Part shown: positions 3,635 to 64,000 of the stretch, in pieces | Numbering within the stretch: the first letter of the stretch is position 1 | How the letters are laid out: every line of letters starts with the position of its first letter | Virus record (IMG/VR): IMGVR_UViG_3300046517_002304 | Coordinates: 1 to 64,000 of that record | DNA: 64,000 nucleotides | Direction: 5' to 3' (one strand) | The notes under the pieces: model-generated | Databases searched by the model: none | The model's input: only the letters and a program-made list of their open reading frames with translations | Told to the model about the DNA's origin: nothing | Translations under genes and position numbers: made by a program

Positions 3635-4108
3635 ATGTTTAAAACATGGCTAGAAACAGTGCAATTAGAAAAACCTTTTGTATTTCTTGATCTTGATGAA
3701 ACACTAATTCACTGTTTGGATTATCCAGATGCAGAATCTATTATAGCAAGGCCGCATTTAGAGCAATTTTTAAAATCGGCCAACAAATTCGCTAACTTAT
3801 GTATTCTAACAAGAAGTCCCAAAAAATATGCAGATGCCATCATGCATAACTTAGGGCTATCTGAGTACTTTGCCCACATATTCAGTAGCAGGGACGATAA
3901 TGATATATGTAAAAAATTAAACTTAGACAAACAAAAATGGGTATTGGTGGACAATCGCTATGCCGATTTTCCCTACACCATTGAGAAGATGGGCCAACTT
4001 GGAAACAACGGCGAGTTGATCAAAATCAAATCATGGATAGGCGATAAAAATGATAATAGATTAATGAAAATTATACCCAAAATCAAAAAAACATTAAATA
4101 TCACATAA
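3635..4108 (+). CDS. NIF/FCP1-like HAD phosphatase
   Basis: LDLDETLIH, RPHLEQFL and LVDN motifs; N-terminus MFKTWLE. Confidence 0.8.
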   Translation: MFKTWLETVQLEKPFVFLDLDETLIHCLDYPDAESIIARPHLEQFLKSANKFANLCILTRSPKKYADAIMHNLGLSEYFAHIFSSRDDNDICKKLNLDKQKWVLVDNRYADFPYTIEKMGQLGNNGELIKIKSWIGDKNDNRLMKIIPKIKKTLNIT

Positions 4109-4142
4109 GATAACTTTCCGAGCCAGAAATAATAAATATAAT

Positions 4143-5084
4143 ATGGCAAAGAAAAAATACAAAAAAAATACATGCTTCCTACCAAAGTTCACCGTAGAAC
4201 CAGTGGTTAGTATGCTAGAAGCATCCCAACGCGCAGGATGGCAAATTACTAAATTTGACTTCCCTGACGTTTGGAAATATACAAGAGGCAAAGGTGTGGT
4301 CGTCGCCGTTATTGATAGCGGCTGCGATATGGATCATGAAGATTTAAAAGACAACCTTATCCCAGGCCCTAACTTCGTTATCCCTACATCCTTGCCAGAA
4401 GATGACTGTGGCCACGGTACGCATTGCGCCAGTTTGATCGCGGCCGAGAATAATGAAGTAGGTTTGATCGGACAATCCCCAGAAGCCAAAGTAATGGTAA
4501 TTAAAACATTGGACAGAAACGGGATAGGAAATTTACAGACTGTAGCCAAGGCTATCAGGTGGGCGGTAGACAGTAAGGCCGATATAATTTCTATGTCACT
4601 AGGATGTCCTAATGAAACTCCAGAAATATATAAAGCCGTAATGTATGCCTATAGCCAGAACGTACCTATATTCTGCGCATCTGGAAACTCTGGAAACCTA
4701 AACAATATATTCTGGCCCGCAAATTATAAAGAAACAATAAGCGTATCTGCTTATGATGAAAATATGCACAGAGCGCATTTTGCCAACGTATCTCCAAATA
4801 TTAACTTCTTTGCGCCAGGGACATCGTTATTCGGAGCATATCTAAATAATGATTATACGATTATGTCTGGAACAAGCATGGCCTGCCCGATAATGGCATC
4901 TGCCGCTGCTCTGATATTATCATATAAGAGAAACTATCAAACAGATATTAAATTAAATTCTGTTGAGGACTACCGAGATATTCTAAAACAATACTGCAAG
5001 CCTATTAGCGATAACTGCTCTCAGGGATTTGGGTTCTTTAATCCAGATGTATTTTTAGAGTGGATTAAGAAACAGCCGGTCTAA
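4143..5084 (+). CDS. Subtilisin-family S8 protease
   Basis: VAVIDSG, GHGTHCA and SGTSMACP catalytic motifs; no signal peptide. Confidence 0.92.
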   Translation: MAKKKYKKNTCFLPKFTVEPVVSMLEASQRAGWQITKFDFPDVWKYTRGKGVVVAVIDSGCDMDHEDLKDNLIPGPNFVIPTSLPEDDCGHGTHCASLIAAENNEVGLIGQSPEAKVMVIKTLDRNGIGNLQTVAKAIRWAVDSKADIISMSLGCPNETPEIYKAVMYAYSQNVPIFCASGNSGNLNNIFWPANYKETISVSAYDENMHRAHFANVSPNINFFAPGTSLFGAYLNNDYTIMSGTSMACPIMASAAALILSYKRNYQTDIKLNSVEDYRDILKQYCKPISDNCSQGFGFFNPDVFLEWIKKQPV

Positions 5085-5266
5085 TCACCTAATTTTGTTT
5101 TAGGATCAATTTTATCAATTTCTATTTTGTTCGCAAATTTTTTAGGCGAACAATACTTTTGAATATCCTCTTCAGTCAAACGGCCATGACGATCTGGCGT
5201 AAGAAATTTCTGCCAGTCATGTGGTCGCCACAACTTCAAATTTTTTATGTACTGTTCTGATGCCAT
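5081..5266 (-). CDS. Hypothetical protein
   Basis: 61 aa ORF, TAATG-coupled to upstream gene. Confidence 0.55.
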   Translation of the reverse strand: MASEQYIKNLKLWRPHDWQKFLTPDRHGRLTEEDIQKYCSPKKFANKIEIDKIDPKTKLGD

Positions 5267-5772
5267 TAGTCTATTTTTACTTTCTTTGCAATCAATTCTT
5301 CCTTTAATTTTTTAAACTCGGCAACCTTTTTTTTAGTCCGCTCCTTATCATACCAAGCCTCATATAAAGACATGATTTCTTTAAAGATTTCTTTTTCTTT
5401 GCTAATGGCGGCTATTCTCTTATTATGAGCAGACAATTCCTGCTTATATTTAACATTAACCTTTGGCTGATTACACTTGAGCATAATAGAGCAACAATCA
5501 TCTTCGGGATACTCTACTGCAACAGCGTAACTTAAGATATCTTTACACTCACAGTTTTCATGAATATACTTTGAGATATCATTCATGGATATCTCATTTC
5601 CTACATAAAATGTATGAATATATCGGTAATTATTAAACACTTCAACTGGCGGAAGTGGCTGGCCCCATGGAATACTTAAATACGGAGATTTATCTGGACG
5701 AAAATTAATATACGAATATCGTTTGCGTAATTTTTCAGGCACATAAGAAGGAAATTTAATTTTATCAAACAT
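5266..5772 (-). CDS. Hypothetical protein, paralog of 5789..6271
   Basis: MFDKIKFPSYVPEKLRKRYSYINF vs MFKKFDVSNLPEHLKKDYKFINF; shared EKxIF and C-terminal FxKLKxxLxAK. Confidence 0.7.
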   Translation of the reverse strand: MFDKIKFPSYVPEKLRKRYSYINFRPDKSPYLSIPWGQPLPPVEVFNNYRYIHTFYVGNEISMNDISKYIHENCECKDILSYAVAVEYPEDDCCSIMLKCNQPKVNVKYKQELSAHNKRIAAISKEKEIFKEIMSLYEAWYDKERTKKKVAEFKKLKEELIAKKVKID

Positions 5773-5788
5773 TTTTACTCTCCACCAA

Positions 5789-8129: not shown

Positions 8130-8134
8130 TATTT

Positions 8135-8935: not shown

Positions 8936-8961
8936 ACCTTATTTACCCTGAGAGGTTGAAA

Positions 8962-11494: not shown

Positions 11495-12244
11495 CTACTT
11501 ACTAAGATCAACAATCTTAAAACCTAGATTAAGCAAGTCAGCAAATCCATCTAAGGATTTCTTTGCCTGCATATCACCTAGAGTATCATTAATCTCATCA
11601 ATAGTAGCTTCTGTTAGTTGTTTTCCTGGGTTATAACCCTTGCTCAAATAAGACGCAAAGCTATAAAGAGCAGACTCAGTCCCACGATAAAACTTAAGAG
11701 CATCGTCTACCATCTTTTCTCTTGAGTAGCTTTCCGATACAACATACTTTGAGCACTTGGAGCACATCCCGTCTTTGGGGTCTTTACTGCCGCAATTACA
11801 GAAATAAGTGTCCATACCGTTGCCAAAATAATTGGCTTCTTCTTTTTTATCATGGCCATGCGCAGCGTGACTACCTTTACCTTCGCATTTGTCGCAATCA
11901 CAATTACACTTTGACTTTCCACCTTTATCCATCATGTCATCATCATCATCGTCCATGTCGTCGTCATCCATATCATCATCTTCGTCACCATCTACATCAT
12001 CATCGTCCATGTCGTCGTCGTCCATGTCATCATCTTCGTCACCATCTACATCATCATCGTCCATGTCTTCGGGTTCTGGGGCAATAGGTTGCTTAGGCGC
12101 TTCTGTAGTAACATCTTCAGTGGCGTCAACATTTGCCCATTGAGCACCGATTACGCCAATGGCCTTTGGTCCAGAAGAAAGTCCAAGTAAAGTAGAAGAT
12201 CCAAGACTTTCATGTAAAAGCTTCCAAGATTTAAAATCTATCAT
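11495..12244 (-). CDS. Highly acidic, Cys-cluster protein with capsid-targeting-like N-terminus
   Basis: MIDFKSWKLLHES start, poly-Asp tract, CNCDCDKC and CNC..CSKC. Confidence 0.7.
   Translation of the reverse strand: MIDFKSWKLLHESLGSSTLLGLSSGPKAIGVIGAQWANVDATEDVTTEAPKQPIAPEPEDMDDDDVDGDEDDDMDDDDMDDDDVDGDEDDDMDDDDMDDDDDDMMDKGGKSKCNCDCDKCEGKGSHAAHGHDKKEEANYFGNGMDTYFCNCGSKDPKDGMCSKCSKYVVSESYSREKMVDDALKFYRGTESALYSFASYLSKGYNPGKQLTEATIDEINDTLGDMQAKKSLDGFADLLNLGFKIVDLSK
11947..12067. repeat. 54-bp coding tandem repeat (about 2.2 copies)
   Basis: 11947-12000 and 12001-12054 differ at 2 positions; encodes the D/E/M-rich tract. Confidence 0.85.
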
Positions 12245-23654: not shown

Positions 23655-24560
23655 TTATAGGTCGTCAATATTAATATTCTTCAAAAAATCGTCGTCTGTA
23701 AGAGCCATGTCTACGTCAGCAGTAGCAAAATCTTCCTTCTTAGACGAAGAAGCGGCCACCTTTGTAACTGTAGCTGGTGCTTTATCAAATGGAGCACGCT
23801 CCACTTTTACAGACTCATCAACCTCTAGACCGCGAAAAATATTTACTTCTTTTAATAGAACGTCAAACGGCTGTGGCTTCTTCCAAGAATTTAGATCATG
23901 GCATTCAGCAAGCCACTCCTTGCAAACCTTCTTATCCTTATGCAAGGGACTTGCGTCCATAAATTCGCTACTCTTCCAGTTTGGATATTCACCCTTAAGT
24001 TCTCGGACGCAATTTAGATCACGGCCAGTTTCAATATCCGTAATATCGCCGAAGCCCTTCTTGTTAAGAAGTGGATTGCCTACGATTGACTTGATAATGT
24101 AAGTGTGAAGTTCTTTTCCTGCACTCAAAATCTTATGAAAGACATCGTACTTTGCTTCGCCCTTTTCGTCAATTTCCTTGCGGACAACAACATTATAGAA
24201 ATAACGTTCAACTGGCTTAATAGAACGAGCCTGTGCTTGTAGTTCTTTTACTTGATTTTCACTTAGATCAGGATTCTCTGACTTCTTCCATAGCGAAGAA
24301 TAAAATTCGCATACTGGACACTGACCCTGCCACATTCCACCGACTAAATTCTTTGAGCACTGAAATCGCTTACCGTTAATAGTATGATTTCTAATAGCCA
24401 CATAAATTGTATCGTTATCATGGCTAGGAGGAAGAATGCGAACTATTGTGCTGCATTCGCCAGGCGGGAAGCGAACAAAGTCCTTAAGAAAATTCTTATT
24501 CTGTCCATTACCTTCAACTCGCTCCAACTCGCTCTTAAATGCTTCTAAATTAATACCCAT
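23655..24560 (-). CDS. gp32-like single-stranded DNA-binding protein
   Basis: VRILPP, H..C..CPVCE Zn site, RYFYNVVVR, DITDIETGRD, acidic tail; start MGINLEAF after GGAG. Confidence 0.85.
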   Translation of the reverse strand: MGINLEAFKSELERVEGNGQNKNFLKDFVRFPPGECSTIVRILPPSHDNDTIYVAIRNHTINGKRFQCSKNLVGGMWQGQCPVCEFYSSLWKKSENPDLSENQVKELQAQARSIKPVERYFYNVVVRKEIDEKGEAKYDVFHKILSAGKELHTYIIKSIVGNPLLNKKGFGDITDIETGRDLNCVRELKGEYPNWKSSEFMDASPLHKDKKVCKEWLAECHDLNSWKKPQPFDVLLKEVNIFRGLEVDESVKVERAPFDKAPATVTKVAASSSKKEDFATADVDMALTDDDFLKNINIDDL

Positions 24561-24645
24561 TTTCTTCTCCGTATTGTTAAAAAATTGTTTCTTGATAGTA
24601 CTTATATCGTCCTGGTTTTTAAAACACATTATATAATTCTGAGAA

Positions 24646-27830: not shown

Positions 27831-28131
27831 CAAAAAGCACAATCCGGAACTACTCAATCACATAACCGTTCGTCATAAAAACGAAAAGGTGGAATTTGTT
27901 TACTTATCAGAACAAAAAAAGGACGCCAAAAAAACGTTTCATCAACTATGCCATCACTTTGATGGGGCTGGATATAATCCATGCGTAATCAATGATGAAA
28001 ATGGAAATCAATTAGCTAAGCTTATATCGGTTTACACCGGCAAGAAAGCCAAGTCAGCATTAGGTGATTTCTGGGGCGGATTATTCCTCGGAGCAACGGT
28101 CACTGCTCTTATTGTTATATGCATACTATAA
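27820..28131 (+). CDS. Hypothetical protein with C-terminal TM helix
   Basis: FWGGLFLGATVTALIVICIL. Confidence 0.6.
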   Translation: MQNNKKHNPELLNHITVRHKNEKVEFVYLSEQKKDAKKTFHQLCHHFDGAGYNPCVINDENGNQLAKLISVYTGKKAKSALGDFWGGLFLGATVTALIVICIL

Positions 28132-28616
28132 TGTTAAATTTCACAGAATGGCTCACTTTTAATGAAGGTCTAAAAATTATAAACGTAGACCCAGAAGAAG
28201 ACTGGGAAATGGGACAAGAGGCAGAAAATATCGCTCACAAAGTCAACATACACATTTCTAGAAATAAAAACCTAACCCTAGTAGCGCTAAATGATCAGGA
28301 AGAAGTAATAGGAGCAGTCTATACTTCATATGAAAAAGACCACAGCGCATCAGAAAATGCGGGCGAGGAAATGTTCCATTTTGATTTTGACGTGGTGGTA
28401 GATCCTAGGTGGCAAGGATATGAAATGGTAGGAATAAAACTAATAAAGGCCGCAGAACAGGAAAGAAAGCATTTAGATATTATGTATGGCCATAAATCAT
28501 ACACCAGAACATGGGTTGTGAACCCGCGATTAGCTAAAATACTTCAACATCCAAGGTTTGGATATGAATCCGAAGGTGAACACGAAGGCGGATCTCACCA
28601 CCTAACAAAGTATTAA
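28131..28616 (+). CDS. GNAT-like acetyltransferase with capsid-targeting-like N-terminus
   Basis: VVVDPRWQG...VGIKLIKAA (motif A), VNPRL..FGY; starts MLNFTEWLTFNE. Confidence 0.65.
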   Translation: MLNFTEWLTFNEGLKIINVDPEEDWEMGQEAENIAHKVNIHISRNKNLTLVALNDQEEVIGAVYTSYEKDHSASENAGEEMFHFDFDVVVDPRWQGYEMVGIKLIKAAEQERKHLDIMYGHKSYTRTWVVNPRLAKILQHPRFGYESEGEHEGGSHHLTKY

Positions 28617-40487: not shown

Positions 40488-41174
40488 ATGATGTTAATAG
40501 AAGAATTGATCTTTAATTATAAGATAACTGATGATAAAGAGAAACTATCAGTATTCATATCTCATCTCTTCTACTCATACGTACAGAAACTCTTTCCTAA
40601 TAATAACATGGTTAGGTTCTCTTGGAAGAAAGACCCTAGAGAAAACATTCTCTTTAAATACTGCTATAAACTTGTAAATGAAACAAGCGGTAAACTTAAC
40701 GCTACCGACTATGAAATATACCTAAGAGCACAAATAGCTGTAATTAAGAACGTTCATGATGTTCTCGCTAAAGATATCATGATTTCCGAACGTTGCTTAG
40801 TAGGAGAAAAGGCGTGGAAAAGATATGTATTTTACAAACATCAGTATGATTTAAAATTACAGCTTAAGTCTGCGAAAGAAGTTGGGGTAAGCTTGCATGA
40901 TTACAGTTTCGTTATTAATGAATTAAAACGATCTAAAAAAGTGCTGACCGCTAAATTAGGTGATTTAAATAAAGAATCTATAGAAAAAGCAGTAAATGGC
41001 AGAGCTATTTTTAGATGGCATGCCGTTGGTTTAATTTCAGGTTACTATCTTGCCTTATCGGAAATTGCTAAGAAAAGCCAATTTTATCCTGACTTGTCAT
41101 TGTATAGAGACGGCCTGACGCCTGAAGTTAAAGAGTTTTTTAAACAAGAATTTGGCTATGAGATTATAAATTAA
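40488..41174 (+). CDS. Hypothetical protein
   Basis: 228 aa, divergent from the polymerase-like pair. Confidence 0.7.
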   Translation: MMLIEELIFNYKITDDKEKLSVFISHLFYSYVQKLFPNNNMVRFSWKKDPRENILFKYCYKLVNETSGKLNATDYEIYLRAQIAVIKNVHDVLAKDIMISERCLVGEKAWKRYVFYKHQYDLKLQLKSAKEVGVSLHDYSFVINELKRSKKVLTAKLGDLNKESIEKAVNGRAIFRWHAVGLISGYYLALSEIAKKSQFYPDLSLYRDGLTPEVKEFFKQEFGYEIIN

Positions 41175-41500
41175 GCCATTTGCGACAGATGAAAGTTTCT
41201 GCGATCTTTAATTTTACTAAACTCCCCGATCAGATCTCTATCTAGGCTAATTTTTTTAGCTTCCATGTCAGATTGACCGTCTTTTTTGACGGTCCACTCA
41301 ACACTTATCTGCCCATGTTTTAACATATCCATCAGTTTTTCGGCAGCGTATGGACCTTCCCAAGGCATATTGTATAACGGGCGTATTACGTATTTGCGGT
41401 CATTGCCTTCTAAAAGAAGCATGGGTGGCTCTTCTGCGACTTCCTGCCCGAATAGTGGGACACCATAGTTTTCTTTGATGTACTGTAAGAAACTCTTCAT
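41171..41500 (-). CDS. GYF_2 (DUF4339)-like protein with capsid-targeting-like N-terminus
   Basis: GPYAAEKLMDMLKHGQISVEWTVKKDG; starts MKSFLQYIKE. Confidence 0.6.
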   Translation of the reverse strand: MKSFLQYIKENYGVPLFGQEVAEEPPMLLLEGNDRKYVIRPLYNMPWEGPYAAEKLMDMLKHGQISVEWTVKKDGQSDMEAKKISLDRDLIGEFSKIKDRRNFHLSQMA

Positions 41501-41707: not shown

Positions 41708-42637
41708 TTAGTAGGAATCTAGTAAATGCATGATAATATGAGCCATTTTCTTTACATGCATGGATGGTGATAGATGTACGTCCCACGAAACAATATCTGG
41801 AACCCATCTATGGACTCTAATCGGCGATGAGATTTCTTGTCCGATACACTTAACTAAACCTGTTTTAGGATTGAAGCTCATGTCAATATTGAATTGCTCC
41901 AGTCGTTCGCCATCAACAGGTCTCATCATGCCGCCGCCGCGAACACTAAAGTAAGTAATGTATCTGTTGTTATTTATTCTTTTAGTTTTCTCATAGATAA
42001 ACCATTCTGGCTTCTCATTTTGAACCCAACTGTCTATCATCTTCACCAAAGGCAGTAGATCGTATTCTTTTTCAGGGTTTAATGGTTTTTCTTTTACTAA
42101 ATGCTCCATATTTTCCCATATTACATCTATAATTTTATTCTCTACATCTGGATCTTCTGATTTTGGCTTAAACTGTATTAATGGTATAGCAGATATACAC
42201 TGCCAAACTAACTCGCCCTCAAAATTATGGCTTAAAACCGATACAAATGCCTTCCAAGAACCGAGTGGGCTTAAGTCTAGTTCTATTGCGCCTTCATTGT
42301 ACTCGCCATGAGCAATATCTTTATTGCTATTTTTATTTTTGTGACCCCATATAATGCTATCACTCCATATCTCTATTGGTTTTAGCGCACCTAACTTTCG
42401 CTTAGACAAAGTATCAATAATTACACCCGCTTCTGCGGGTTGAATAGCATGGTTGTTTTTAGATATTGGTTGGAGTTTACTAAGTTTTCCAAAGCCGAAA
42501 ATATCTTTGTGCTTCCCGAAGTATTCTTCTGGCTCTGCTCTTTTGGGAAGTTTTTGAAGATTTGGGTCTATAACAGGCCGTTCTTTGGATTTAAATCCAA
42601 ACATGTCTTCTTGCATCCAGTTAGCGAAACTTCCCAT
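41708..42637 (-). CDS. Hypothetical protein with capsid-targeting-like N-terminus
   Basis: MGSFANWMQED; TAAATA-N4-ATG. Confidence 0.7.
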   Translation of the reverse strand: MGSFANWMQEDMFGFKSKERPVIDPNLQKLPKRAEPEEYFGKHKDIFGFGKLSKLQPISKNNHAIQPAEAGVIIDTLSKRKLGALKPIEIWSDSIIWGHKNKNSNKDIAHGEYNEGAIELDLSPLGSWKAFVSVLSHNFEGELVWQCISAIPLIQFKPKSEDPDVENKIIDVIWENMEHLVKEKPLNPEKEYDLLPLVKMIDSWVQNEKPEWFIYEKTKRINNNRYITYFSVRGGGMMRPVDGERLEQFNIDMSFNPKTGLVKCIGQEISSPIRVHRWVPDIVSWDVHLSPSMHVKKMAHIIMHLLDSY

Positions 42638-42660: not shown

Positions 42661-43191
42661 TTAAAACTGCTCATTAGTACCCTTCACAAAATTATAAAAA
42701 TCAGCTAGTTCATCATTTGACCTAGGAAGATACTTATTTTGAGAACGGTCAAAATCCTGCGCAGCCTTTCGTCCGTACACCTTTATTACTCTTGCTTTAG
42801 ATGGGTCGTTAACAAAAAATTCGTTACCGAAACCCCGGCTAGATTGGAAATATTGATTTCTTGGAACTTGAGTCATGTCAATTAAGGCTACGTATTGCCT
42901 ATTTCCATAGCTTGACCAGTTAGCCAGATGAGATGTGATCATAAATTTACCAACGTCTACCCCTCCTGTAGCCAAGCTAGACATATCTCTAGGGCCTTTG
43001 TTTGGGTCTATCTGAAAATTAGGATCATCTGTCCAATGCCAATACAAACCATGCTTAATTTGTATTTGATAATCTTGATAAAAATCTTTTAAAGATGGAG
43101 CCTTTATGGCTTCAGCGGCAAGTCCACGAAGAATGGCGGTTTTTAGGTTCCACTTGCGAGATTCTTCTAGGAATAGCTTAAATGAACTCAT
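42661..43191 (-). CDS. Possible ADP-ribosyltransferase-fold protein with capsid-targeting-like N-terminus
   Basis: LYWHWT..FMITS..NEFFV spacing resembles the H-Y/S-E ART core; starts MSSFKLFLEE. Confidence 0.45.
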   Translation of the reverse strand: MSSFKLFLEESRKWNLKTAILRGLAAEAIKAPSLKDFYQDYQIQIKHGLYWHWTDDPNFQIDPNKGPRDMSSLATGGVDVGKFMITSHLANWSSYGNRQYVALIDMTQVPRNQYFQSSRGFGNEFFVNDPSKARVIKVYGRKAAQDFDRSQNKYLPRSNDELADFYNFVKGTNEQF

Positions 43192-43208
43192 GCAATATAT
43201 ATTGTATG
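43189..43208. promoter_or_regulatory. Bidirectional TATATA box with ATG 4 nt away on each strand
   Basis: CAT-gcaa-TATATA-ttgt-ATG. Confidence 0.7.
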
Positions 43209-43496
43209 CAAACCTTTAAACAGTATTGGGAATCTCGGGTTTTAGGCGCAGATGACATTAAGCGAATTATCTTTAACTCGCTTGGGATCAATATTGACAG
43301 CGCGCAGGAAAAAGACTATCTTAACAATAATCTTTCTGACTACAGCAACCGAAATGAGATTTTACGCGCACAGGCGATTAGAGAGTTGCCAAATTTTGAT
43401 GAAATCAAAAGAGTTATTACCGTAGACTACAACAAATTCACAATCGGTACTCTAATAAGCTACATAGACAAATTGGTAAATCCAGGAGAAATCTGA
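43206..43496 (+). CDS. Hypothetical protein with capsid-targeting-like N-terminus
   Basis: MQTFKQYWES. Confidence 0.7.
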   Translation: MQTFKQYWESRVLGADDIKRIIFNSLGINIDSAQEKDYLNNNLSDYSNRNEILRAQAIRELPNFDEIKRVITVDYNKFTIGTLISYIDKLVNPGEI

Positions 43497-44296: not shown

Positions 44297-44695
44297 TTAT
44301 ATGGGAGTAAACTTCCCAAACATTTTGCATGCGGCATCGCATAATTGAATTGACAACGATATATTCTTTTGATCAATGGCATCTTTTAATTCAAAAACCT
44401 TTTTCTGAAGTTCTTTTAGGAAATCTAATATTTTAATTGTCGCGCCATATTTTGGTCTTACAGACATTTTATCTATACCATCCTGTATTGCTTCGTAACA
44501 TCGCCCCAACATTCTTTCTGCCCAATGAATATCTCTAGTTCCCTTGCTGGCCATATCCAGCATTTCTTTAGTCATAAATATTGGCTCGCCGATTGAGTTT
44601 AGGATACTTATCATAAATCCAGTAAACATTTCTTCATCCGTATACATTGGAGCATCGTTTCCGTCATTCTCTAGCCACAGTTTAAAACTACTCAT
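44297..44695 (-). CDS. Hypothetical protein with capsid-targeting-like N-terminus
   Basis: MSSFKLWLEND. Confidence 0.7.
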   Translation of the reverse strand: MSSFKLWLENDGNDAPMYTDEEMFTGFMISILNSIGEPIFMTKEMLDMASKGTRDIHWAERMLGRCYEAIQDGIDKMSVRPKYGATIKILDFLKELQKKVFELKDAIDQKNISLSIQLCDAACKMFGKFTPI

Positions 44696-44901
44696 TTATG
44701 CTTCTTTCTTCGCTTTCGCTTTTTTTCATGGCTAGTATAATAACCACCCCATGACCATACTGGCATTGCCATAGGCAGTCCAAATCCCCCACCGGCACCA
44801 CCATTTGATCCGGCTCCGCACATACCTCCTGTGCCGCCAGCTCCCGCCATCCCACCGCCACAACCACATTGTTCCATACGCCATTGTTCAAATGTTTTCA
44901 T
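44692..44901 (-). CDS. Small Gly-rich protein with basic tail and capsid-targeting-like N-terminus
   Basis: MKTFEQWRME..GGG..KKRKRRKKHK; TAAATA-N4-ATG. Confidence 0.7.
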   Translation of the reverse strand: MKTFEQWRMEQCGCGGGMAGAGGTGGMCGAGSNGGAGGGFGLPMAMPVWSWGGYYTSHEKKRKRRKKHK

Positions 44902-45553: not shown

Positions 45554-45739
45554 TTATTTTACTTTTTTAACCTTCTTCTTTTTAATAATTATATTTGGCA
45601 TATCACAGGCGCAACATCCGGTTTCAGAAGTTTCATCTTTTTGCGGCATAGATTGAGTGTTGGATGAACAGGCATCGCTTCCTGCCATATTGTCTAAGGA
45701 AGTTTCTTTAATTTTAATCCACTCATGGAAAGTTTGCAT
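45554..45739 (-). CDS. Small protein with capsid-targeting-like N-terminus and Lys tail
   Basis: MQTFHEWIKIKE..CCAC..KKKKVKKVK. Confidence 0.6.
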   Translation of the reverse strand: MQTFHEWIKIKETSLDNMAGSDACSSNTQSMPQKDETSETGCCACDMPNIIIKKKKVKKVK

Positions 45740-45750
45740 ATATATTATAT

Positions 45751-45954
45751 ATGGCCGCTTGCCCTACTATCATCAGTTCTGAAGACCCCACTTTTCCAGA
45801 ATTTCAGAGGCCCTATACGCCGATTACGTATCAGAGTTGCCGTGGGTGCGCCGATTCACAGGTTACAGATAATGCATATCCATTGCCCGATCTAGTGATA
45901 AATAATACACCAAAAGTCGTAGTAGGAAGATTATCTCGTCAAGATTTTTCTTGA
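45751..45954 (+). CDS. Hypothetical protein
   Basis: 67 aa, divergent from 45739 across an 11-nt AT spacer. Confidence 0.55.
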   Translation: MAACPTIISSEDPTFPEFQRPYTPITYQSCRGCADSQVTDNAYPLPDLVINNTPKVVVGRLSRQDFS

Positions 45955-52964: not shown

Positions 52965-53309
52965 TTACAGGGAATTCGTTTGAATTGTGTCTTTGCCGGC
53001 TAGATTATGCATTGTTTCAGCAGTTTGGTCAATAGCACCTTTCAAATCTTCGCTGGTATCGATAGATTTTAGTATAAAAACGGCAACCTTTTGAAGCTCT
53101 TTAAGCGTGCTGGTATCAGAATCGTCCCAATCGTCGTTTAATATTTTACGAATCTCATTGGCGATATTTGTAGCTGTTTTGATAATCTGCCTACTGCCCA
53201 TTTGAGCAGCATCATTTTGCAAAGAATCTATCGCATTTACGATTGGACCGATACGGTCGTTTAAGATTTTCTTTTGTTCGTTCAAGACGAACTTTTTGAA
53301 GCGTGTCAT
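52965..53309 (-). CDS. Helical protein with capsid-targeting-like N-terminus
   Basis: MTRFKKFVLNE; TATATA-N4-ATG. Confidence 0.7.
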   Translation of the reverse strand: MTRFKKFVLNEQKKILNDRIGPIVNAIDSLQNDAAQMGSRQIIKTATNIANEIRKILNDDWDDSDTSTLKELQKVAVFILKSIDTSEDLKGAIDQTAETMHNLAGKDTIQTNSL

Positions 53310-53326
53310 ACGATATATATGGTAGC

Positions 53327-54025
53327 ATGGAAAACGAAAAAAATCAAGACCACATTGAAATGGCTTTATTCAGAGCTGGACCTTTGCATCCTTACAGGCT
53401 TAAAATTGAAAAAATGCTCAAGGATTTACCGGTAAAAACTGGCGACATTTTGTTTCGGCTGGATGGATACGTGTTTTGGGGATTGTTCAATTTTAGCGAA
53501 ACTGTATGCACTTTAACAAAATCAAATTTTGATCATGCTGCCGTAGTTTACGTAGAAAACGAAATTCCGATGGTGGTAGAAATAAGTGACCAGGGATGTA
53601 CTTTGTTTCGCCTTGTAGATTGGGCAGATTATGTTTTTGCTTCCACTTTTTCCGTTTACAGACTAAAGACCGGACTGGATACTGACGCCAATATAGCAAA
53701 ATTGCAGGAGTCTGTCAAGACTCTTATTGCCAGCGATCCAGATTATGATTTTTCGTTCGGTAATGAAAATGGTAAATTTTATTGCACAGAGTTTGTGGCA
53801 AAGGTTTATGAAGATGCTGGTTTGCCTTTAATGAAACCCATGTTAATAAAAGACATTATGGGTGGCGGCTGGAGATACTGGCTATTTTATGCAATAAACA
53901 AATTAGCTGGAAAAATTACTGGAATGTGTTTTAACGCGGAGACTCCGATGTATTTTGTTGGTAACAATAAACAAGGAATGATGTCATCGCCGCTAATTAG
54001 TTTGATGGCTAAGATTAGTTTCTAA
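53327..54025 (+). CDS. Permuted papain-like NlpC/P60 (YiiX/YebB-like) enzyme
   Basis: GDILFR, FDHAAV, YDF, FYCTEFV. Confidence 0.8.
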   Translation: MENEKNQDHIEMALFRAGPLHPYRLKIEKMLKDLPVKTGDILFRLDGYVFWGLFNFSETVCTLTKSNFDHAAVVYVENEIPMVVEISDQGCTLFRLVDWADYVFASTFSVYRLKTGLDTDANIAKLQESVKTLIASDPDYDFSFGNENGKFYCTEFVAKVYEDAGLPLMKPMLIKDIMGGGWRYWLFYAINKLAGKITGMCFNAETPMYFVGNNKQGMMSSPLISLMAKISF

Positions 54026-54826
54026 TAATCTACTTTCAGCTATATCGCAGTATTTTTGTTCCAAGTCAATTCCGATGTATTGTCTGCCAGCATTTTTTGC
54101 AGCAACGCATGTAGTTCCCGATCCGCAAAATGGGTCTAAAATAATATCGCCGATGAAAGATGCTAATTTTATACATCTATGAGGTATCTCTAATGGAAAC
54201 GGTGCAGGATGCCCAAATTTGTTTTTTCCCATAGCTGGTGGTACGGCCCAAATTTGCATTCCATAAGACTTGAATTCTTCTGGAGTTAGCGCAGATTGCT
54301 TTCGTAAATCATCAGTTACATCTTTTCTTGTTCCTGATTTGCGGAACCATAAGATATACTCTACTTCTTGCACTAGAGGGATTTCGCCGGGTGAATGGAA
54401 GCGGCCATATGACCCGAGTAGACGGTTAGAACCACCTGATGCATGCGATCCTCTAATCTTTTTCCACAAGACAATTTCTTTGTAATCTAAAGCATTGCGT
54501 AAATGCATAATTAAATGTGCATGAGACGGCAAGACTATATTTTTCCCTAAGTTTTTTAAGCTTGTATGTCTGTCGTCAATGTTAATTACTAATTTTCCTG
54601 CTGGCTTTAATATTCTGACGCATTCATCAAAAATTGAACAAAGCCATGAGATATAAATGTTCCATTCACCAACGACATCTTTGCTTTTGGCATCGCCACC
54701 TTGATGGTAGTCTAATGTCTGTATAAAATATGGAGGACTAGTAATCACCATGTTCACACATTCATTGGGCATTTTCTTTAATATTTCTAGGGAATCTCCG
54801 CATATAATTTTGTTAGTTTCTAGCAT
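53993..54826 (-). CDS. Beta-class N4C/N6A DNA methyltransferase
   Basis: TSPPY, HPAPFP, LDPFCGSGTT. Confidence 0.92.
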   Translation of the reverse strand: MLETNKIICGDSLEILKKMPNECVNMVITSPPYFIQTLDYHQGGDAKSKDVVGEWNIYISWLCSIFDECVRILKPAGKLVINIDDRHTSLKNLGKNIVLPSHAHLIMHLRNALDYKEIVLWKKIRGSHASGGSNRLLGSYGRFHSPGEIPLVQEVEYILWFRKSGTRKDVTDDLRKQSALTPEEFKSYGMQIWAVPPAMGKNKFGHPAPFPLEIPHRCIKLASFIGDIILDPFCGSGTTCVAAKNAGRQYIGIDLEQKYCDIAESRLLETNLSHQTN

Positions 54827-54841
54827 GTACTATAATAGTTC

Positions 54842-55690
54842 GTGAACATTTTTATATCAGGCGGCATAGGCGATTTCATAGCATTAGAGTCTCATTTTTC
54901 CGATGAGATGCGGAGTGAATTAAAGACAGTATACCTTGCTAGCAGGGCCAATAAAGAAATAGCCGAACTCATTAATGCCGTTTATCCTAATGTTAAATGT
55001 GAAATTGTGTGGAGTGACTTTACTAAATTTCCTTGTTTCTTTAGCATAGATGATTTTAAATTAGCTGGTGGAAGTATTTCTGATGATGTAGAAGATTGGA
55101 GCATAATGGCCAAGTTCAATCTAGGTGAAATTACTAGAATGAGTATTCCAGGCCAGTCTCCATTAGAAATATTGCATGAGTTTCAGAGAAAAAATAAATT
55201 ACTTTCAGAATATAATGGCTCTAGTTTTTTGAAGAATAGATTGTGTAATTTACCTGAAAAGTTAGATTGTTATAATGATTTTATAAGAAGATGGAGTAAT
55301 AGAAGTAGAGATACTTTGCTTAATGATTACGTAGTTATTTTTCCTTATACTGGCACCCCTACTACTTCCGCAGGTAGAAATTTTAATGACATAGACTGGA
55401 AATACGTAAAAACTGTAAATAAAAAGGCTATTGTACTCGGAAACCTTTTTAATCAGCCAATCCCGCCTTTAGCCTTTAATGTAAAAACGACAATACCAGA
55501 GTCTATTGAAATATTAAAGGGCGCATCCGGGTATATCGGCATTGATTCATTCTTATCAGTGCTTGCCGCTAAGTTATTTGAATACCCTAATCTAAAAGTT
55601 AAAAGTATCAATCCACATTGCTATAATGCTAAACACATTTATTATGCGCCGCAAACTAATTTTGAATTTTTAAAGGAAAGTATATGCTAG
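54842..55690 (+). CDS. GT9-like glycosyltransferase (paralog of 14602..15498)
   Basis: GGIGDFIALES, GYIGIDSFLSVLAAKLF, HIYYAP. Confidence 0.7.
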   Translation: MNIFISGGIGDFIALESHFSDEMRSELKTVYLASRANKEIAELINAVYPNVKCEIVWSDFTKFPCFFSIDDFKLAGGSISDDVEDWSIMAKFNLGEITRMSIPGQSPLEILHEFQRKNKLLSEYNGSSFLKNRLCNLPEKLDCYNDFIRRWSNRSRDTLLNDYVVIFPYTGTPTTSAGRNFNDIDWKYVKTVNKKAIVLGNLFNQPIPPLAFNVKTTIPESIEILKGASGYIGIDSFLSVLAAKLFEYPNLKVKSINPHCYNAKHIYYAPQTNFEFLKESIC

Positions 55691-56424
55691 GGTTAAATAA
55701 GATTTATTATGGAAATTGTGTTGACGTTATGTCTGGATGCATAGAAGACAATACAATTCATTTAATTGTTACTTCACCGCCGTATCACATCCAAAAGGAC
55801 TATGAGAAAAAAACTACTTACGATGATTATTGTGCGATGATGGAGTCTTTCTTTAAAGAATCGCAACGAGCTTTAATTGGCGGCGGATATTTGGTTGTAA
55901 ACTTTGGAGATTACTTTAATTCTGGTAATCGGTTTTATACGTCTGATGTTCCTGCATGTTACCCAGCAGCGTTAAACTATTTTAACTGGGGCGTCACAAA
56001 AGCCGGAATGGACTTGCAAGCAACAAGAATATGGAGAAAGAAATTTGCAAAAATGGGAATCCCGTTTGTTTGCAACAAAGCGCCTCGTGGAATTTATGAT
56101 TATGAACATATTTGGACGTTTAGAAAAAAGAATGGAAGTAAAGAAGAGTTTGTAAACGATAGAAAGTTATCTCAGCGTGGAGTGCTGGGGGAATCTTGGA
56201 AATCAGCGGCTAAGATAGGCGAGCATTGTTCTGGATTCCCAGTTGAACTACCAGAGTGGGCTATTAAAGTTTATAGTAAAAATGAGAGCGATATTGTTTT
56301 AGATCCGTTCATCGGTGGAGGCACGACGGCAGTTGCGGCCAAAAACCTTGGGCGTAGCTATATCGGGATAGACTGCTGCGCAGAATATTGTAAATTAGCT
56401 ATGGAAAGATTAATGACGCAATAA
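55684..56424 (+). CDS. Beta-class N4C/N6A DNA methyltransferase
   Basis: TSPPY, HCSGFP, LDPFIGGGTT. Confidence 0.9.
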   Translation: MLGLNKIYYGNCVDVMSGCIEDNTIHLIVTSPPYHIQKDYEKKTTYDDYCAMMESFFKESQRALIGGGYLVVNFGDYFNSGNRFYTSDVPACYPAALNYFNWGVTKAGMDLQATRIWRKKFAKMGIPFVCNKAPRGIYDYEHIWTFRKKNGSKEEFVNDRKLSQRGVLGESWKSAAKIGEHCSGFPVELPEWAIKVYSKNESDIVLDPFIGGGTTAVAAKNLGRSYIGIDCCAEYCKLAMERLMTQ

Positions 56425-59120: not shown

Positions 59121-60259
59121 GATAATAATGAATCTGGATCGCAATACTTATTTCTTGCCTGAATTGCATCATTAAGTACCTTAAATTTACCTATTGTTTT
59201 TCGTTTTCCGTTAACTGGAGCAGTAACTAAATAATGTCCTGATTTTAAATAGTTTATATATTTGTGGCCTGATTTAGGGAGAAGATCACACGGACATAAA
59301 GATTTTTCGTTTATTGAGTGCGGAGTTTTAGTAAAGGTAACTCCATGACAACATTTTAACACTACATGAATATCTGTTGACTGGTAATCAGACATTAAGT
59401 TCCACTTAAGTTTATCTAATTTTTCTTTTAATACCTGCTTACTATGAGCGACTATTTCTAGCGACTTACTTTCACGATTCTCGCACTTACGCGCAAAGCA
59501 TTTCCATGGTATAAAAGGCTTGACTCCGGCGATGAAGTTAAACCAGTTATCCCCCGATAATCTAATGATTGGGTGATTGTTATCATGCCTATTTCTTAAG
59601 TATATTTTCCCAGATACTCCTAGATCTCTTTGTAGTACATAATTCAAAAATTCAGCATCGTGTAACGTAAATCCATCGGTGTGAAGTACGAGGTATCTGC
59701 CGTCTATATTATTATGTCCATCATCGCAAAACCATACTGCCGCCGCTACCCACGATAGATTAATTTCTTGAGGTATGGATTTTATACCACTTGGATACCA
59801 TTTATTTCTAAGTTCTAAAAAAATAGGATGCTGTACAGTTCTAAATGATACCGAATACGAGTATTCCCCACCCCAGTTAGATATTTCATGATTAATACAT
59901 CCGTTAACAGATGATGGTTTTCTTCGTTTGATTTCTTTTAATTCTAATGAAAAAGGAGATAATATACTTTTTATGAAAGACACATATTCAGTATTATTGC
60001 TCATTTGCTTAAGAGTGAATCTACTTTGAGAGTAATTGCCCTTAGGCTTCTCAAGAGAGCCGTCGCCCAGTAAATTTCCAGTTATATATTCTGTTTGTAT
60101 GGCGGTTAGAACATTTGGGTATAATGCTGCATGTTGAGCAGATTTATGTTTAGCCGCGCAATCTGCGGAGCAGCATTTTCTTTTATTTTCTTGTGACGGA
60201 ATAACAAAAAATTTAGAACCACAGCATAAGCATATTTTGTCCGACCCGCTCATCGTCAT
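59117..60259 (-). mobile_element. Free-standing LAGLIDADG homing endonuclease (Zn finger + LAGLIDADG_2 + AP2-like)
   Basis: CLCC..CCSADC, GNLLGDG, WFCDDG, C-terminal GKF..DAIQARN; overlaps the nrdB stop. Confidence 0.85.
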
Positions 60260-61314
60260 AGTTCAAACCCACTTAAATCCATACTTTGAACATCATTGAC
60301 CATAGCATTAATTTTGTAGTTAGTCAAGGTATGCTCTTGAGGAGCAACTTGAACTGCCGATGTATTGTTCCAGTTTGAGAGCCATCCGATAGGATTCTTA
60401 ACATTGCCAAAAAGTTGTGGTAATCCGAGAGATTTAGTTCTAATATTACATAACCATTCTATGTACTGAGCGAGTATTTTTTCATTCAGCCCAAGGATAG
60501 AGCCATCTTTAAATAAATATTCAGCCCATTGCTTTTCGGATTCAACGGCATCCTTAAACATATCCATTGCTATATCTTTATTTTTCTTAACGGTTTCAGT
60601 AAATCCTTCATCATCTACATTGGTTAGCAGTTTAATAATTTGCTGAGTGATAATTACGTGTTTATTTTCATCTCTGTTTATAAGCTTTAAAATATCGGCA
60701 TTCCCAATTAGCTTACGATTCTGGCCGAATGCGAAGCTGCAAGCAAACGAGACGTAAAACTTAATACTTTCCATGATATTAGTCGCTATTAAGCTTAAGA
60801 AAATATTATCTTTAATGTTATCTTTGGTAGAATTTAGAAGATTGTCATATTTTTCCTTTGTAGATTGTGCTCTACTAACAATTTCTTTATCTTCTAAAAT
60901 ACTATTAAATATTTCATTAGGGTCATTAAAAATGCCTTTGATCACGTACGTATAGCTATATGAATGTATATTTTCGAAGAACATCCACGTATTCATCGCA
61001 AACTCTAGTTCTGGTAAACTCACATGCTCTGTGAGCGTATTGATATATCTGGAAATAATTGAATCTAGTAAAGTTTGATATTTAAGATTAGATGTAAAAA
61101 TAAATTGTTCATTCTTACTTAGACTGTCAAATGACGCTTTGTCTAATTCTACGGATACTTCTTCAGGCGTCCAAAAATTTTGAATTTGTTCTCTAGCCAA
61201 CTTGTAAAATACTGGATATCGAAACGCATCGTATCTTTGCAACGAGAGTTTTGCTCCGAGAAACATTGGTTCTTTTGTGGTATCTACTGTTATATTATTT
61301 AAAACTGTTTTCAT
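60256..61314 (-). CDS. nrdB: Ribonucleotide reductase class Ia beta subunit
   Basis: FWTPEE, QTLLDS, ENIHSYSY, ESIKFYVSF, RDENKH, VAPQE. Confidence 0.95.
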   Translation of the reverse strand: MKTVLNNITVDTTKEPMFLGAKLSLQRYDAFRYPVFYKLAREQIQNFWTPEEVSVELDKASFDSLSKNEQFIFTSNLKYQTLLDSIISRYINTLTEHVSLPELEFAMNTWMFFENIHSYSYTYVIKGIFNDPNEIFNSILEDKEIVSRAQSTKEKYDNLLNSTKDNIKDNIFLSLIATNIMESIKFYVSFACSFAFGQNRKLIGNADILKLINRDENKHVIITQQIIKLLTNVDDEGFTETVKKNKDIAMDMFKDAVESEKQWAEYLFKDGSILGLNEKILAQYIEWLCNIRTKSLGLPQLFGNVKNPIGWLSNWNNTSAVQVAPQEHTLTNYKINAMVNDVQSMDLSGFEL

Positions 61315-61315
61315 G

Positions 61316-63577
61316 TTACAAGCTGCATGCTCCTGACTCGCATCCTCTTATTTGAGATTCATCAGTACTATCGACATAACCATCGTTTGAGTTGAGGTAA
61401 TAAAGTGTTTTAATTCCAACTTTCCATGCATATAATTGCTCTTTTATGATCAAACTCATTGGAATTTCTTTGGTCTCAAAGTGATCATAATTATAGTACA
61501 CGTTGGTTGAAATGGACATATCTACGTACTTCTGGCAAGTGGCAGCGATGTTAAGCATTCCGATATTGCTTCGCATGTCAAATGCTTTAGTGTAATGATT
61601 TTTATAACGATTAAATTCTGGTACAATTTGCTTTAAGTTCCCTTTTTTAGATTTTTTAATCGATAAAAGTTGTCTCGGTGCCTCAATTCCATTTGTACTA
61701 TTTTGAATGACCGAAGAACTTTCTACTGGCATAATTGCCGTTAGCGTACTATGTCTTAGTCCGTATTTTATTATATCGGCACGAAGTGCTTCCCAGTTGA
61801 ATGAAAGTTTTCTATCCACGATAGTGTCTACAAACTTTGTGTATGTATCTATTGGCAGGATACCTTGCGAATACTTAGTGAGATTAAATTTTTTGCATGC
61901 TCCTTTTTCCTTAGCAAGATTACAAGATGCCTTAAGTAGATTGTATTGAATTGCTTCCATCCATTCATCTATAAGGTAACATGCTTTTGGATCTTCGTAT
62001 TTTAACTTATTTACAGCAAGAAATGCCGCCAGATTTGTTATTCCCACACCTAGAGATCTTCTATTAACGGCAAAATTTTCTGCCGCCTTAACTGGGTATT
62101 GCTGATGATCAATAACAGCGTCAAGTAATCGTACGATAATATCGCAAACTGATTCTAGTTCGTCAAAATCTTTTATTTTTAATAAATTAACTGCTGATAG
62201 TATGCATACTCCAATTTCTGCATCTGGATCATCTATATGTTTTTGGGGCACTAGAGGCTGGAGAATCTCACAACACAAGTTTGTAACATTGATTTTGTCC
62301 TTGAAACTATTGTGTGAATTAGCATGATCAACGTTTAGGGCATAAATTCTCCCAGTTTCCAATCGTTCGCGTACATATGCTTCCATGAACTCTTTTGCCT
62401 TGACTTTTTTTCTAAATTGTAAACTTTCGTCTTTTTCGTACTTCTTATACAAATCGTCAAATTCAGGAAGACCAAATGCAGAATAAAGCCCTTTTGCCTC
62501 ATGCGGAGAAAATAAGGTAATATAATCATCCGCAATTAATCTTTCATAAAATAATTTACTAAATGAAACGCAGTAGTCTAATTGTCTGACAGAGAATTCA
62601 GCAGTTTTAGAATTATTTTTTAGTGTTATCATTTCCATGGATTCGTAGTGCCAGAATGGAAATGTGACGGTTGCGTTTGCTCCTCTAATTCCATTCTGGC
62701 TGCATGACTTAACCGTTGCCTCAAAAATTTTAGCGTAAGGTATTACTCCAGTGTGCACTACTTCAGATTTGCGAATGGGAGATCCTATTGGGCGAATTCT
62801 CCCAAGATTGATGCCAATCCCCGCTCGTTTACTGGAGTAGTAAGCGACAGACGTTGCCGCACTCATGATTCCTTCCATTGAATCATCAATATCGATTAAG
62901 CAGCATGAACTGTACTGCCGAACTAGTGTTCTAACACCAGCCATTATTGGAGTTGGTAAATTAATTTTAAACTTACTGATATAATCATAGCACTTACGGA
63001 CATAATGTAGACGGCAATCTTCTGGATAATTTGCGAATAAAGTCATAGCAATTAATATGTTCGCAAACTGCGGAGTTTCGTGTAATGTTCCGGTAAGTCG
63101 GTCTTGGCACAAATATTTATCGACTAACTGCTGTAGTCCCGCATAAGTGAAATCATAATCCCTATCATGATTTACAAAGCGATTAATTTTATGAATTTCT
63201 GTTTCGGTATACTTTTCTAAAATAAACTTGTCGTAAATTCCCTTATTTACATTTTCTTGAATTTGCTCTAATAATCGGGGAGGTTCTTCGCCGCCCCAAA
63301 CTTCTTTCCTTACCCAGAATAAAAGTAAACGAGCTGCCACATATTGATATGAGGGAGCATCTTCTGATATCAAATTATTCGCTGATCGAATGAGCAAATT
63401 GTGAATTTCTTTAGTCGAAATGCCATCCACTAATTCCAACTTCGCCCCGACCTCAATTTCCGACACAGAAGTATCTGGATAACCATCACACCCCCAACTT
63501 AAAACCTTATGAATTTTCTCAATATCTAACTCTTCCAGCCGCCCATTCCTCTTCCTTACATTAATTTTTCCCGACAT
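61316..63577 (-). CDS. nrdA: Ribonucleotide reductase class Ia alpha subunit with ATP cone
   Basis: VRKRNG ATP cone, PTPIMAG, SSCC, NLCCEI, MPVESSS, TLYY, C-terminal CESGAC. Confidence 0.97.
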   Translation of the reverse strand: MSGKINVRKRNGRLEELDIEKIHKVLSWGCDGYPDTSVSEIEVGAKLELVDGISTKEIHNLLIRSANNLISEDAPSYQYVAARLLLFWVRKEVWGGEEPPRLLEQIQENVNKGIYDKFILEKYTETEIHKINRFVNHDRDYDFTYAGLQQLVDKYLCQDRLTGTLHETPQFANILIAMTLFANYPEDCRLHYVRKCYDYISKFKINLPTPIMAGVRTLVRQYSSCCLIDIDDSMEGIMSAATSVAYYSSKRAGIGINLGRIRPIGSPIRKSEVVHTGVIPYAKIFEATVKSCSQNGIRGANATVTFPFWHYESMEMITLKNNSKTAEFSVRQLDYCVSFSKLFYERLIADDYITLFSPHEAKGLYSAFGLPEFDDLYKKYEKDESLQFRKKVKAKEFMEAYVRERLETGRIYALNVDHANSHNSFKDKINVTNLCCEILQPLVPQKHIDDPDAEIGVCILSAVNLLKIKDFDELESVCDIIVRLLDAVIDHQQYPVKAAENFAVNRRSLGVGITNLAAFLAVNKLKYEDPKACYLIDEWMEAIQYNLLKASCNLAKEKGACKKFNLTKYSQGILPIDTYTKFVDTIVDRKLSFNWEALRADIIKYGLRHSTLTAIMPVESSSVIQNSTNGIEAPRQLLSIKKSKKGNLKQIVPEFNRYKNHYTKAFDMRSNIGMLNIAATCQKYVDMSISTNVYYNYDHFETKEIPMSLIIKEQLYAWKVGIKTLYYLNSNDGYVDSTDESQIRGCESGACSL

Positions 63578-63681
63578 TTATTCTCAATCCTTCTTATTTT
63601 TAGATAAGGTATGTAAGTATAACATACTCAAATTTTATACTCTTGCCCGACATACATATATCGTGGATTATAGGACAACGC

Positions 63682-64000
63682 ATGAAAACTTTTTTAGAAT
63701 ATTTTCAACTATATGAAGACACATCAAATGATGTGCAGATGGCTTTCGGTGATGCCGAAAGTAAGGTAAAAAGTATATTCGCATACCTACACAAGGTTAT
63801 GATGAATACGTGGGGAAAACAGGCTCCATCGTGGGATGATCAATTAAAAAACAAGGTAATCGGTGAGCTACAAAACGTTATTGACAAGCTTAAAGGAAAA
63901 GTAAATAAAACCGAAGCATGTGATGCCGCAAAAATGGCAGTCAAAGAAAGCATTGTTTTGCTTGAAGGCGGCGCAATTCCAGATTGGATGCAAGGTATGG
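63682..64000 (+). CDS. Partial protein with capsid-targeting-like N-terminus
   Basis: Manual translation MKTFLEYFQLYED..., open to the window end; AGGA SD and TACATA upstream. Confidence 0.7.
   Translation, partial: MKTFLEYFQLYEDTSNDVQMAFGDAESKVKSIFAYLHKVMMNTWGKQAPSWDDQLKNKVIGELQNVIDKLKGKVNKTEACDAAKMAVKESIVLLEGGAIPDWMQGM

Follow-up and report, generated by a model that had tools for sequence, protein, structure and literature searches.

A T4-like N-terminal tag on about 38 mostly unrelated proteins of a 511-kb soil phage: candidate capsid targeting sequences

In phage T4, proteins unrelated to one another carry a common N-terminal propeptide of 10-19 residues, the capsid targeting sequence (CTS), of the form M-K-T-[Y/F]-x-E-F-I-x-E. 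The first ten residues of internal protein III (IPIII) suffice for capsid targeting. Mutagenesis indicates that targeting depends most on residues 4 and 7 and processing on residues 8 and 10, the prohead protease gp21 cuts after Glu in an L/I-x-E context, and the CTS-bearing internal proteins (IPs) and Alt are ejected (PMC9026906). In the T4 record AF158101, IPII and IPIII begin with MKTYQEFIAE and IPI with MKTFKEF..., and variant tags occur on gp24 (MAKINELLRE) and Alt (MELITELFDE). Here we describe N-terminal tags of this kind in a phage genome of 511,233 bp with direct terminal repeats, IMG/VR record IMGVR_UViG_3300046517_002304. Its first 64 kb (positions 1 to 64,000), the stretch in which the tags were initially recognized, is called the window below.

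Giant phages of the phiKZ type provide a second point of comparison. Like the 511-kb phage, phiKZ, 201phi2-1 and SPN3US are giants with a gp21-related protease, which cuts many of their head proteins after Glu, and the internal proteins that they eject amount to a large bolus (PMC5694885, PMC9026906). However, phiKZ-type propeptides are mostly longer than 100 residues, share no short tag and are cut at S/A/G-x-E, whereas the tag of the 511-kb phage is short, uniform and directly T4-like. The capsid and lifestyle of the phiKZ type also differ, with a virion RNA polymerase and a phage nucleus. Our literature search turned up no description of capsid targeting sequences in a huge phage. Because almost none of these phages has been cultivated, what their capsids contain besides DNA is largely unknown.

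The initial annotation of the window had listed twelve proteins that begin with M-x-x-F-x-x-[WFY]-x(1-4)-E or a shortened form of it and had likened the motif to the T4 tag. All twelve peptides are present at the positions listed (Table 1), and seven of the starts cluster at 41.5-45.7 kb, much as described. The count itself proved too low. A crude gene caller assigned 92% of the sequence (39% G+C; standard genetic code) to about 856 genes, and we scanned the whole genome with M-x(0-2)-F-x-x-[WFY]-x(1-4)-E, which also admits F at position 2-3. This motif stands at the N-terminus of 38 of the 856 called proteins, compared to 2.4 expected from its rate at internal Met residues (p=5e-32), and 26 of the tagged genes lie beyond the window. 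The comparison of N-terminal with internal positions that the annotation had proposed gives the same picture for the strict motif, M-x-x-F-x-x-[WFY]-x(1-4)-E, with 18 N-termini genome-wide and 0.6 expected (p=1e-20). A reversed-motif control was found twice (3.4 expected). Motifs relaxed to a non-F residue at position 4 or a nonaromatic residue at position 7 gave no significant excess, although they yielded a few plausible extras such as MKTWTQYCE (157167) and MKTWTQYLE (157396). Clusters of tagged genes lie at 41-46 kb (seven genes), 63.6-74, 81-86, 143-165, 232-251, 309 and 490.8-491 kb. When the carriers were compared all-against-all by BLAST with their tags removed, only two paralogous pairs emerged among the 38, so that about 36 unrelated families carry the tag.

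The tags also agree at positions that the scan motif leaves free. Position F+4 is hydrophobic in 35 of 38 (p=1e-13), F+1 is K/R in 20 and F+2 is E/Q/D in 19, leading to the consensus M-(x)-x-F4-(K/R)-(E/Q)-[W/F/Y]7-[L/I/V]8-x(0-3)-E. Positions 4, 7, 8 and the final Glu, the functional positions of the T4 CTS, are those conserved in the 511-kb phage. At the far end of the tag, 36 of 38 have L/I/V/M/F/W/Y two residues before the Glu, and 29 have S/D/T/A/G/N directly after it. Judged by sequence, the tag ends fit the hydrophobic-x-Glu context of gp21 cleavage. Unlike the T4 tags, those of the 511-kb phage span 7-13 residues, prefer Trp at position 7 and belong to genes spread in several clusters over 511 kb.

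The genome contains a T4-type head module. Its Gp23 major capsid gene (161684-163135, minus strand; Pfam E=4.8e-87) encodes a protein about 30% identical to the capsids of cyanophage and other T4-like phages, its portal gene matches Portal_T4 (E=5.7e-63), and its prohead protease gene (164128-164814, minus strand) matches Peptidase_S77 (E=1.4e-25). The protease shares 35% identity with T4 gp21, and the His of LDHP and the Ser of GVSTRG, which we take to be the catalytic residues, align. Between protease and capsid lies an open reading frame (ORF) of 303 codons for an acidic coiled-coil protein, an order that matches T4 genes 21-22-23. By its position, coiled coil and acidic composition, this ORF is a putative scaffold gene. 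Homologues of gp4, gp19, gp25 and gp53 were also identified by phmmer or Pfam. By its shared core of gp20, gp21, gp23, gp4, gp19, gp25 and gp53, the 511-kb phage is a member of the T4 superfamily; a megablast search with 20 kb of the window returned no match among GenBank phages. On the minus strand at 153450-153632 (locus L011), adjoining the tagged paralogues 153771 and 155201, a short stretch with two internal stop codons matches Gp23 over profile positions 4-62 (E=1.6e-9).

Taken together, the T4-type head genes, the match to T4 IPI, IPII and IPIII, the conserved positions and the hydrophobic-x-Glu endings uphold the initial view of a T4-like capsid-targeting tag on unrelated proteins. In both T4 and the 511-kb phage, the cargo is diverse and the genome encodes a gp21-family protease together with a gp23/gp20 head. 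The scale differs: the 511-kb phage has about 38 tagged proteins and a 595-kb relative about 40, whereas T4 has about four (IPI-III and gp61.1) besides the variant tags on Alt and gp24; the scan of T4 picks out IPII, IPIII and gp61.1. The last of these, a hypothetical T4 protein of 54 residues (AF158101, 18966-19130, minus strand; locus L237), starts with the CTS-like sequence MKTFKEFIKE and lies outside the known IP genes.

Relatives of the phage retain the tag. Contigs with a capsid protein about 65% identical contain tagged genes, and LR756511, a complete 595-kb uncultured phage whose capsid is 61% identical, has 38-44 tagged ORFs counted from the first Met. Recognizable orthologues at 26-45% identity keep the tag; in the 595-kb genome, for example, the orthologue of 42637 begins with MKSFASWFNE (26% identity in the body of the protein) and that of 53309 with MEFKKFLITE/Q (37% identity; the slash follows the tag Glu). 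For the tagged gene 69605, all six database homologues carry the tag. Two of them seem untagged at first sight due to mis-called starts, since MEFRKWLE lies in frame just upstream, behind a TATATA box. In these two (L193:5951-5974 and L194:5585-5608), the automatic calls begin at the second ATG and drop MEFRKWLE. Gene callers clip tagged genes to the second ATG because the true start lacks a ribosome-binding site, and tags are probably under-represented in public protein sets.

The tag can also be separated from its carrier. The NUDIX orthologue in LR756511 is untagged, as is a fusion of NIF and RelA/SpoT domains in another phage. These untagged relatives and the presence of only two paralogous pairs indicate that the tag is modular. 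A scan of IMG/VR for MKTFxEW recovered many true N-terminal tags, often several per locus, and all five of the large contigs tested (181-572 kb) encode Gp23. The N-terminal motif scan used for the 511-kb genome showed no enrichment in the T4-type jumbo phage Xoo-sp13 (309 kb) or in the first 300 kb of LR756508, indicating that the tag expansion is specific to this clade. We considered and rejected the idea of a "hyperplastic" cargo with lower conservation than other proteins of the genome, as the 595-kb relative matches 16% of the tagged and 21% of the other proteins, a nonsignificant difference. Two Peptidase_S77 homologues were noticed in LR756511.1 (242621-242989 and 526118-526534, both on the minus strand); the 511-kb phage has one.

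Many tagged genes stand directly behind a promoter-like box, in agreement with the TANATA box described initially. The sequence TA[TA]A[TA]A occurs exactly 4 nt before the ATG of 15 of the 38 tagged genes and 27 of the 818 others. With a distance of 4-6 nt allowed, the counts are 21 of 38 and 47 of 818, about 70 genes in all, and no Shine-Dalgarno sequence is present. Seventeen tagged genes lack the box, some of them having ordinary leaders, and about 47 genes have the box without the tag, their N-termini being unrelated. The genome also contains 32 divergent gene pairs with spacers of 5-40 nt, many with either one palindromic ATATATAT or two back-to-back TAAATA boxes. The late promoter of the T4 family is TATAAATA / NATAAATA (PMC2984593), and the boxes before tagged genes, (C/A)TAAATA and TATATA, are similar to NATAAATA. 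An exact TATAAATA precedes the gp25-like gene, and the box is also found before the gp4-like gene. In T4 itself about 27 nt separate the late box from the ATG and include a ribosome-binding site, whereas here the box ends 4-6 nt from the ATG. This arrangement suggests leaderless or near-leaderless transcripts from T4-like late-type promoters.

Several tagged proteins have enzyme signatures, not all of them as initially labeled. Within the window, the HAD/NIF phosphatase (3635) is firm and the acetyltransferase of the GNAT type (28131) is weak (Pfam Acetyltransf_7 E=0.014, below cut-off; PHROG acetyltransferase 1.5e-4). The protein called ADP-ribosyltransferase (ART)-like (43191) has PARP, Arr-ms and ART-PolyVal leads in the atlas search, all under reliable scores. 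A better supported prediction of an ART fold, albeit with weak Foldseek scores, lies just beyond the window in 69605. The proposed GYF_2 binder (41500) did not hold up (E=0.072, not significant), and the acidic and basic peptides did, the mature part of the acidic protein 12244 having an isoelectric point (pI) of 4.1 and 44901 and 45739 having polybasic tails. Farther along the genome, tagged 235840 is firmly a NUDIX protein, tagged 490788 (490246-490788) is a firm RelA_SpoT match above the gathering score, and tagged 250726 resembles DUF2441-like proteins. In four peptides of 4-6 kDa (44901, 45739, 85924 and 490997), the tag is followed by a Gly/Ala-rich stretch and a polybasic tail; these peptides could neutralize DNA charge.

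The tagged protein 69605 (275 residues) matches Pfam PARP below cut-off (E=1.8e-4), and PF00644 is found in four of its six homologues. Its AlphaFold2 model has a pLDDT of 76, and nearly all of the top 50 Foldseek matches listed belong to the ART superfamily, with weak scores (best E=8e-4, TM 0.27-0.39). The model places the tag in front of the domain as an N-terminal helix of low confidence, with residues 3-7 helical. The model lends some support to an ART fold for 69605, a candidate analogue of T4 Alt, which is packaged in the head, ejected and modifies host proteins. Like Alt, the predicted ART-fold enzyme has an N-terminal tag ending in Glu. Unlike Alt, it is short (275 versus 682 residues) and shows no sequence homology to it, and its nearest structural matches among those listed, again with weak scores, are Tpt1/KptA and toxin-type ARTs.

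The NIF and RelA/SpoT domains are arranged differently in another phage. In the 511-kb phage they belong to separate tagged genes (3635-4108 and 490246-490788), about 24 kb apart across the genome ends. In the other (L238:1887-2798, protein P0002), a NIF phosphatase and a RelA/SpoT-like domain are fused in an untagged protein encoded behind an ATAAATA-N4-ATG box, and the domain junction contains a tag-like remnant, NKEWVED.

Even with a tag that targets the head, the tagged proteins might be mainly internal parts of the head or scaffold core rather than host-directed effectors. As such they would be comparable to T4 gp67 and gp68 or to the inner body of phiKZ, with roles in assembling a very large capsid, setting its head size or condensing its DNA. 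Tagged 142989, 153771/155201 and 165093 are near the head module, the four tiny peptides with polybasic tails and one poly-acidic protein like T4 gp67 would suit such a role, most tagged proteins have no enzymatic signature, and phiKZ-type giant phages process many inner-body proteins (PMC9026906). We nevertheless consider it unlikely that this accounts for the set as a whole. At least 5-6 tagged enzyme folds (NIF phosphatase, NUDIX, RelA/SpoT, ART fold, GNAT-like) have no obvious assembly role, and the CTS-bearing IPs and Alt of T4 are ejected. Some members of the set could have structural and others effector roles.

Two further explanations dispense with head targeting, and we give both very little credence. 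The tag could direct proteins elsewhere, to a membrane, a secretion route, a phage-built compartment, a chaperone or a degradation pathway, its likeness to the T4 CTS being convergent. A short amphipathic N-terminal helix such as that modeled for 69605 serves many purposes. However, the match to T4 extends to nonhydrophobic residues (M-K-T-F-K/Q-E-), the Glu lies in a gp21-type context, among the contigs checked the tag is found only alongside T4-type heads, and its acidic character is unsuited to membrane binding or Sec/Tat export, all of which make another destination highly improbable. Still harder to credit is a nucleic-acid by-product, in which codons 2-10 are set by leaderless initiation, an initially transcribed promoter element or a copied recombination cassette. 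The excess of ATG-abutting boxes without Shine-Dalgarno sequences at tagged genes fits such an origin, as do the many tagged genes in divergent spacers of 9-36 nt. The codons do not. At the conserved Phe, TTT:TTC is 26:12, and at the Glu, GAA:GAG is 27:10, both like genome-wide usage; Leu codons in the tags are mixed and likewise follow the genome. Third codon positions of different tags agree with an identity of 0.37, and no two tags exceed a nucleotide identity of 0.74 over 27 nt. Genome-like codons and this low third-position identity indicate that selection acts on the peptide rather than the nucleotides, and on these grounds we reject a nucleotide-level origin of the motif. The by-product explanation is largely refuted by these data, and the 17 unboxed tagged genes, the roughly 47 boxed untagged genes and the boxed, untagged NIF-RelA/SpoT fusion also speak against it.

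We therefore strongly favor the reading of the tags as T4-type capsid targeting sequences, N-terminal propeptides on proteins that are candidates for packaging and injection. By analogy with T4, a role as a head-targeting propeptide is highly probable and cleavage after the Glu only slightly less so; that most of the cargo is ejected and acts on the host has about an even chance. The system would then be the known T4-type capsid targeting, expanded roughly tenfold. The tagged proteins would be expressed from TAAATA/TATATA boxes abutting the ATG, as leaderless transcripts. By extension from T4 mutagenesis, the aromatic pair (positions 4 and 7 in T4 numbering) would dock the pre-protein on the scaffolding core of the assembling prohead. 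The prohead protease would cut after the tag Glu, with its hydrophobic residue two before, and free the mature protein inside the shell. The cargo would remain associated with the packaged DNA, and at least part of it might be ejected like T4 IPI-III and Alt, to act at time zero. It would include ART-fold proteins, a RelA/SpoT-like nucleotidyltransferase, a NUDIX hydrolase, a NIF/HAD phosphatase, a probable acetyltransferase, an acidic protein and polybasic peptides.

A broader proposal, which we put forward tentatively as somewhat less than evenly likely, is that a clade of 450-600-kb soil phages of the T4 superfamily injects a capsid arsenal of 40-50 members with its DNA, readable from the 7-13-residue tag. 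Under this proposal the arsenal would hold several ART-fold proteins, an alarmone-synthetase-like enzyme, a NUDIX protein, a phosphatase, an acetyltransferase and DNA-coating polybasic peptides, and the tag with its ATG-abutting promoter would be a portable "package-me" cassette that any gene can gain or lose. Should the tag function as it does in T4, a genome sequence by itself would yield a catalogue of about 40 packaged proteins, some ten times as many as T4 has. Such a catalogue would provide concrete candidates for first-minute host takeover or anti-defense and a simple mining rule for other metagenomic phages, and the tag could extend the T4 "expression-packaging-processing" idea to other capsids.

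A number of observations weigh against reading the tags as capsid targeting sequences on injected cargo. About 30 of the 38 tagged proteins have no recognizable function, with Pfam, PHROG and atlas searches returning nothing for most of the cargo. In 16 of 38 tags an aromatic residue (W/F/Y) stands two before the Glu, where T4 has L/I. Neither sequence nor PHROG searches matched the putative scaffold, and T4 gp22 and gp55, used as single-sequence queries, matched nothing in the genome, which is not evidence of their absence. The box also precedes SbcC-like, single-stranded DNA-binding protein (SSB) and homing-endonuclease genes, which rules it out as a purely structural late promoter and makes its late class tentative. 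Nothing from one soil metatranscriptome (7% of capsid-gene words) was placed on 41-46 kb. Finally, the phage is uncultivated, and DNA near-identical to the window comes from soil and rhizosphere metagenomes only.

Table 1. Tagged genes and a shared spacer in the window. Genes are named in the text by the position of their start; a slash follows the tag Glu.
Feature	Coordinates	Strand	Tag and length	Remarks
Tagged NIF-like (HAD superfamily) phosphatase	3635..4108	+	MFKTWLE/T, 157 aa	Pfam NIF E=1.5e-21, Hydrolase 1e-6
Tagged acidic protein	11495..12244	-	MIDFKSWKLLHE/S, 249 aa	Mature pI 4.1, poly-Asp stretch
Tagged GNAT/acetyltransferase-like (weak)	28131..28616	+	MLNFTEWLTFNE/G, 161 aa	
Tagged gene	41171..41500	-	MKSFLQYIKE/N, 109 aa	
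Tagged gene	41708..42637	-	MGSFANWMQE/D, 309 aa	TAAATA box 4 nt upstream
Tagged gene, weak ART-fold leads	42661..43191	-	MSSFKLFLE/E, 176 aa	
Divergent intergenic spacer, 14 nt	43192..43205	.		gcaATATATATtgt; common to tagged 43191 and 43206
Tagged gene	43206..43496	+	MQTFKQYWE/S, 96 aa	
Tagged gene	44297..44695	-	MSSFKLWLE/N, 132 aa	Purine-rich leader, no box
Tagged small peptide	44692..44901	-	MKTFEQWRME/Q, 69 aa	TAAATA box 4 nt upstream
Tagged small peptide	45554..45739	-	MQTFHEWIKIKE/T, 61 aa	Polybasic tail KKKKVKKVK
Tagged gene	52965..53309	-	MTRFKKFVLNE/Q, 114 aa	
Tagged gene	63682..64000 (continues to 64515)	+	MKTFLEYFQLYE/D, 277 aa	Weak PHROG match 3.3e-4

Nine of the tagged genes in the window begin at the first ATG of the open frame, and two, 28131 and 43206, begin at the second. 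The second ATG is favored for 28131 because it overlaps the upstream stop as TAATG, and for 43206 because it lies 4 nt after a TATATA box. The start of 3635 is 5 nt past the upstream stop, and TATAAT directly abuts the ATG of 12244. The spacer between 43191 and 43206 contains one palindromic box, 4 nt from each of the two ATGs. Tagged 53309 shares with gene 53327 a 17-nt spacer (53310-53326) containing a TATATAT box. The boxless leader of 44695 indicates that the tag occurs also without the box.

Among the products, 12244 and 43206 had no Pfam or PHROG family, and 42637 gave neither family nor lead in the Pfam, PHROG and atlas searches. The 44901 peptide is Gly/Cys-rich, with the C-terminal tail KKRKRRKKHK and a mature pI of 10.0.

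The initial annotation had proposed that the motif should not be as common on replication genes. In the window, no replication or nucleotide-metabolism gene is tagged; the ribonucleotide reductase, SSB and methyltransferase genes all lack the tag. A PHROG match supports the gp32-like SSB gene (23655-24629). Genes that seem to resemble DNA methyltransferases and an apparent pair of ribonucleotide reductase genes, judged by N-terminal sequence only, occupy 53993-56424 and 60256-63577.

Tagged 45739 and the divergent gene 45751 share an 11-nt spacer, atatattatat (45740-45750). The product of 45751 (45751-45954, plus strand) has a counterpart elsewhere in the genome (140716-140901, minus strand). 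Both are small untagged proteins encoded in divergent box-sharing pairs, 45751 with a tagged partner and 140901 with an untagged one. Their N-termini are Cys-rich and contain a PEFQ motif near residue 17-20 (MAACPTIISSEDPTFPEFQR and MSCCDPNQSNQNVPDAPEFQ).

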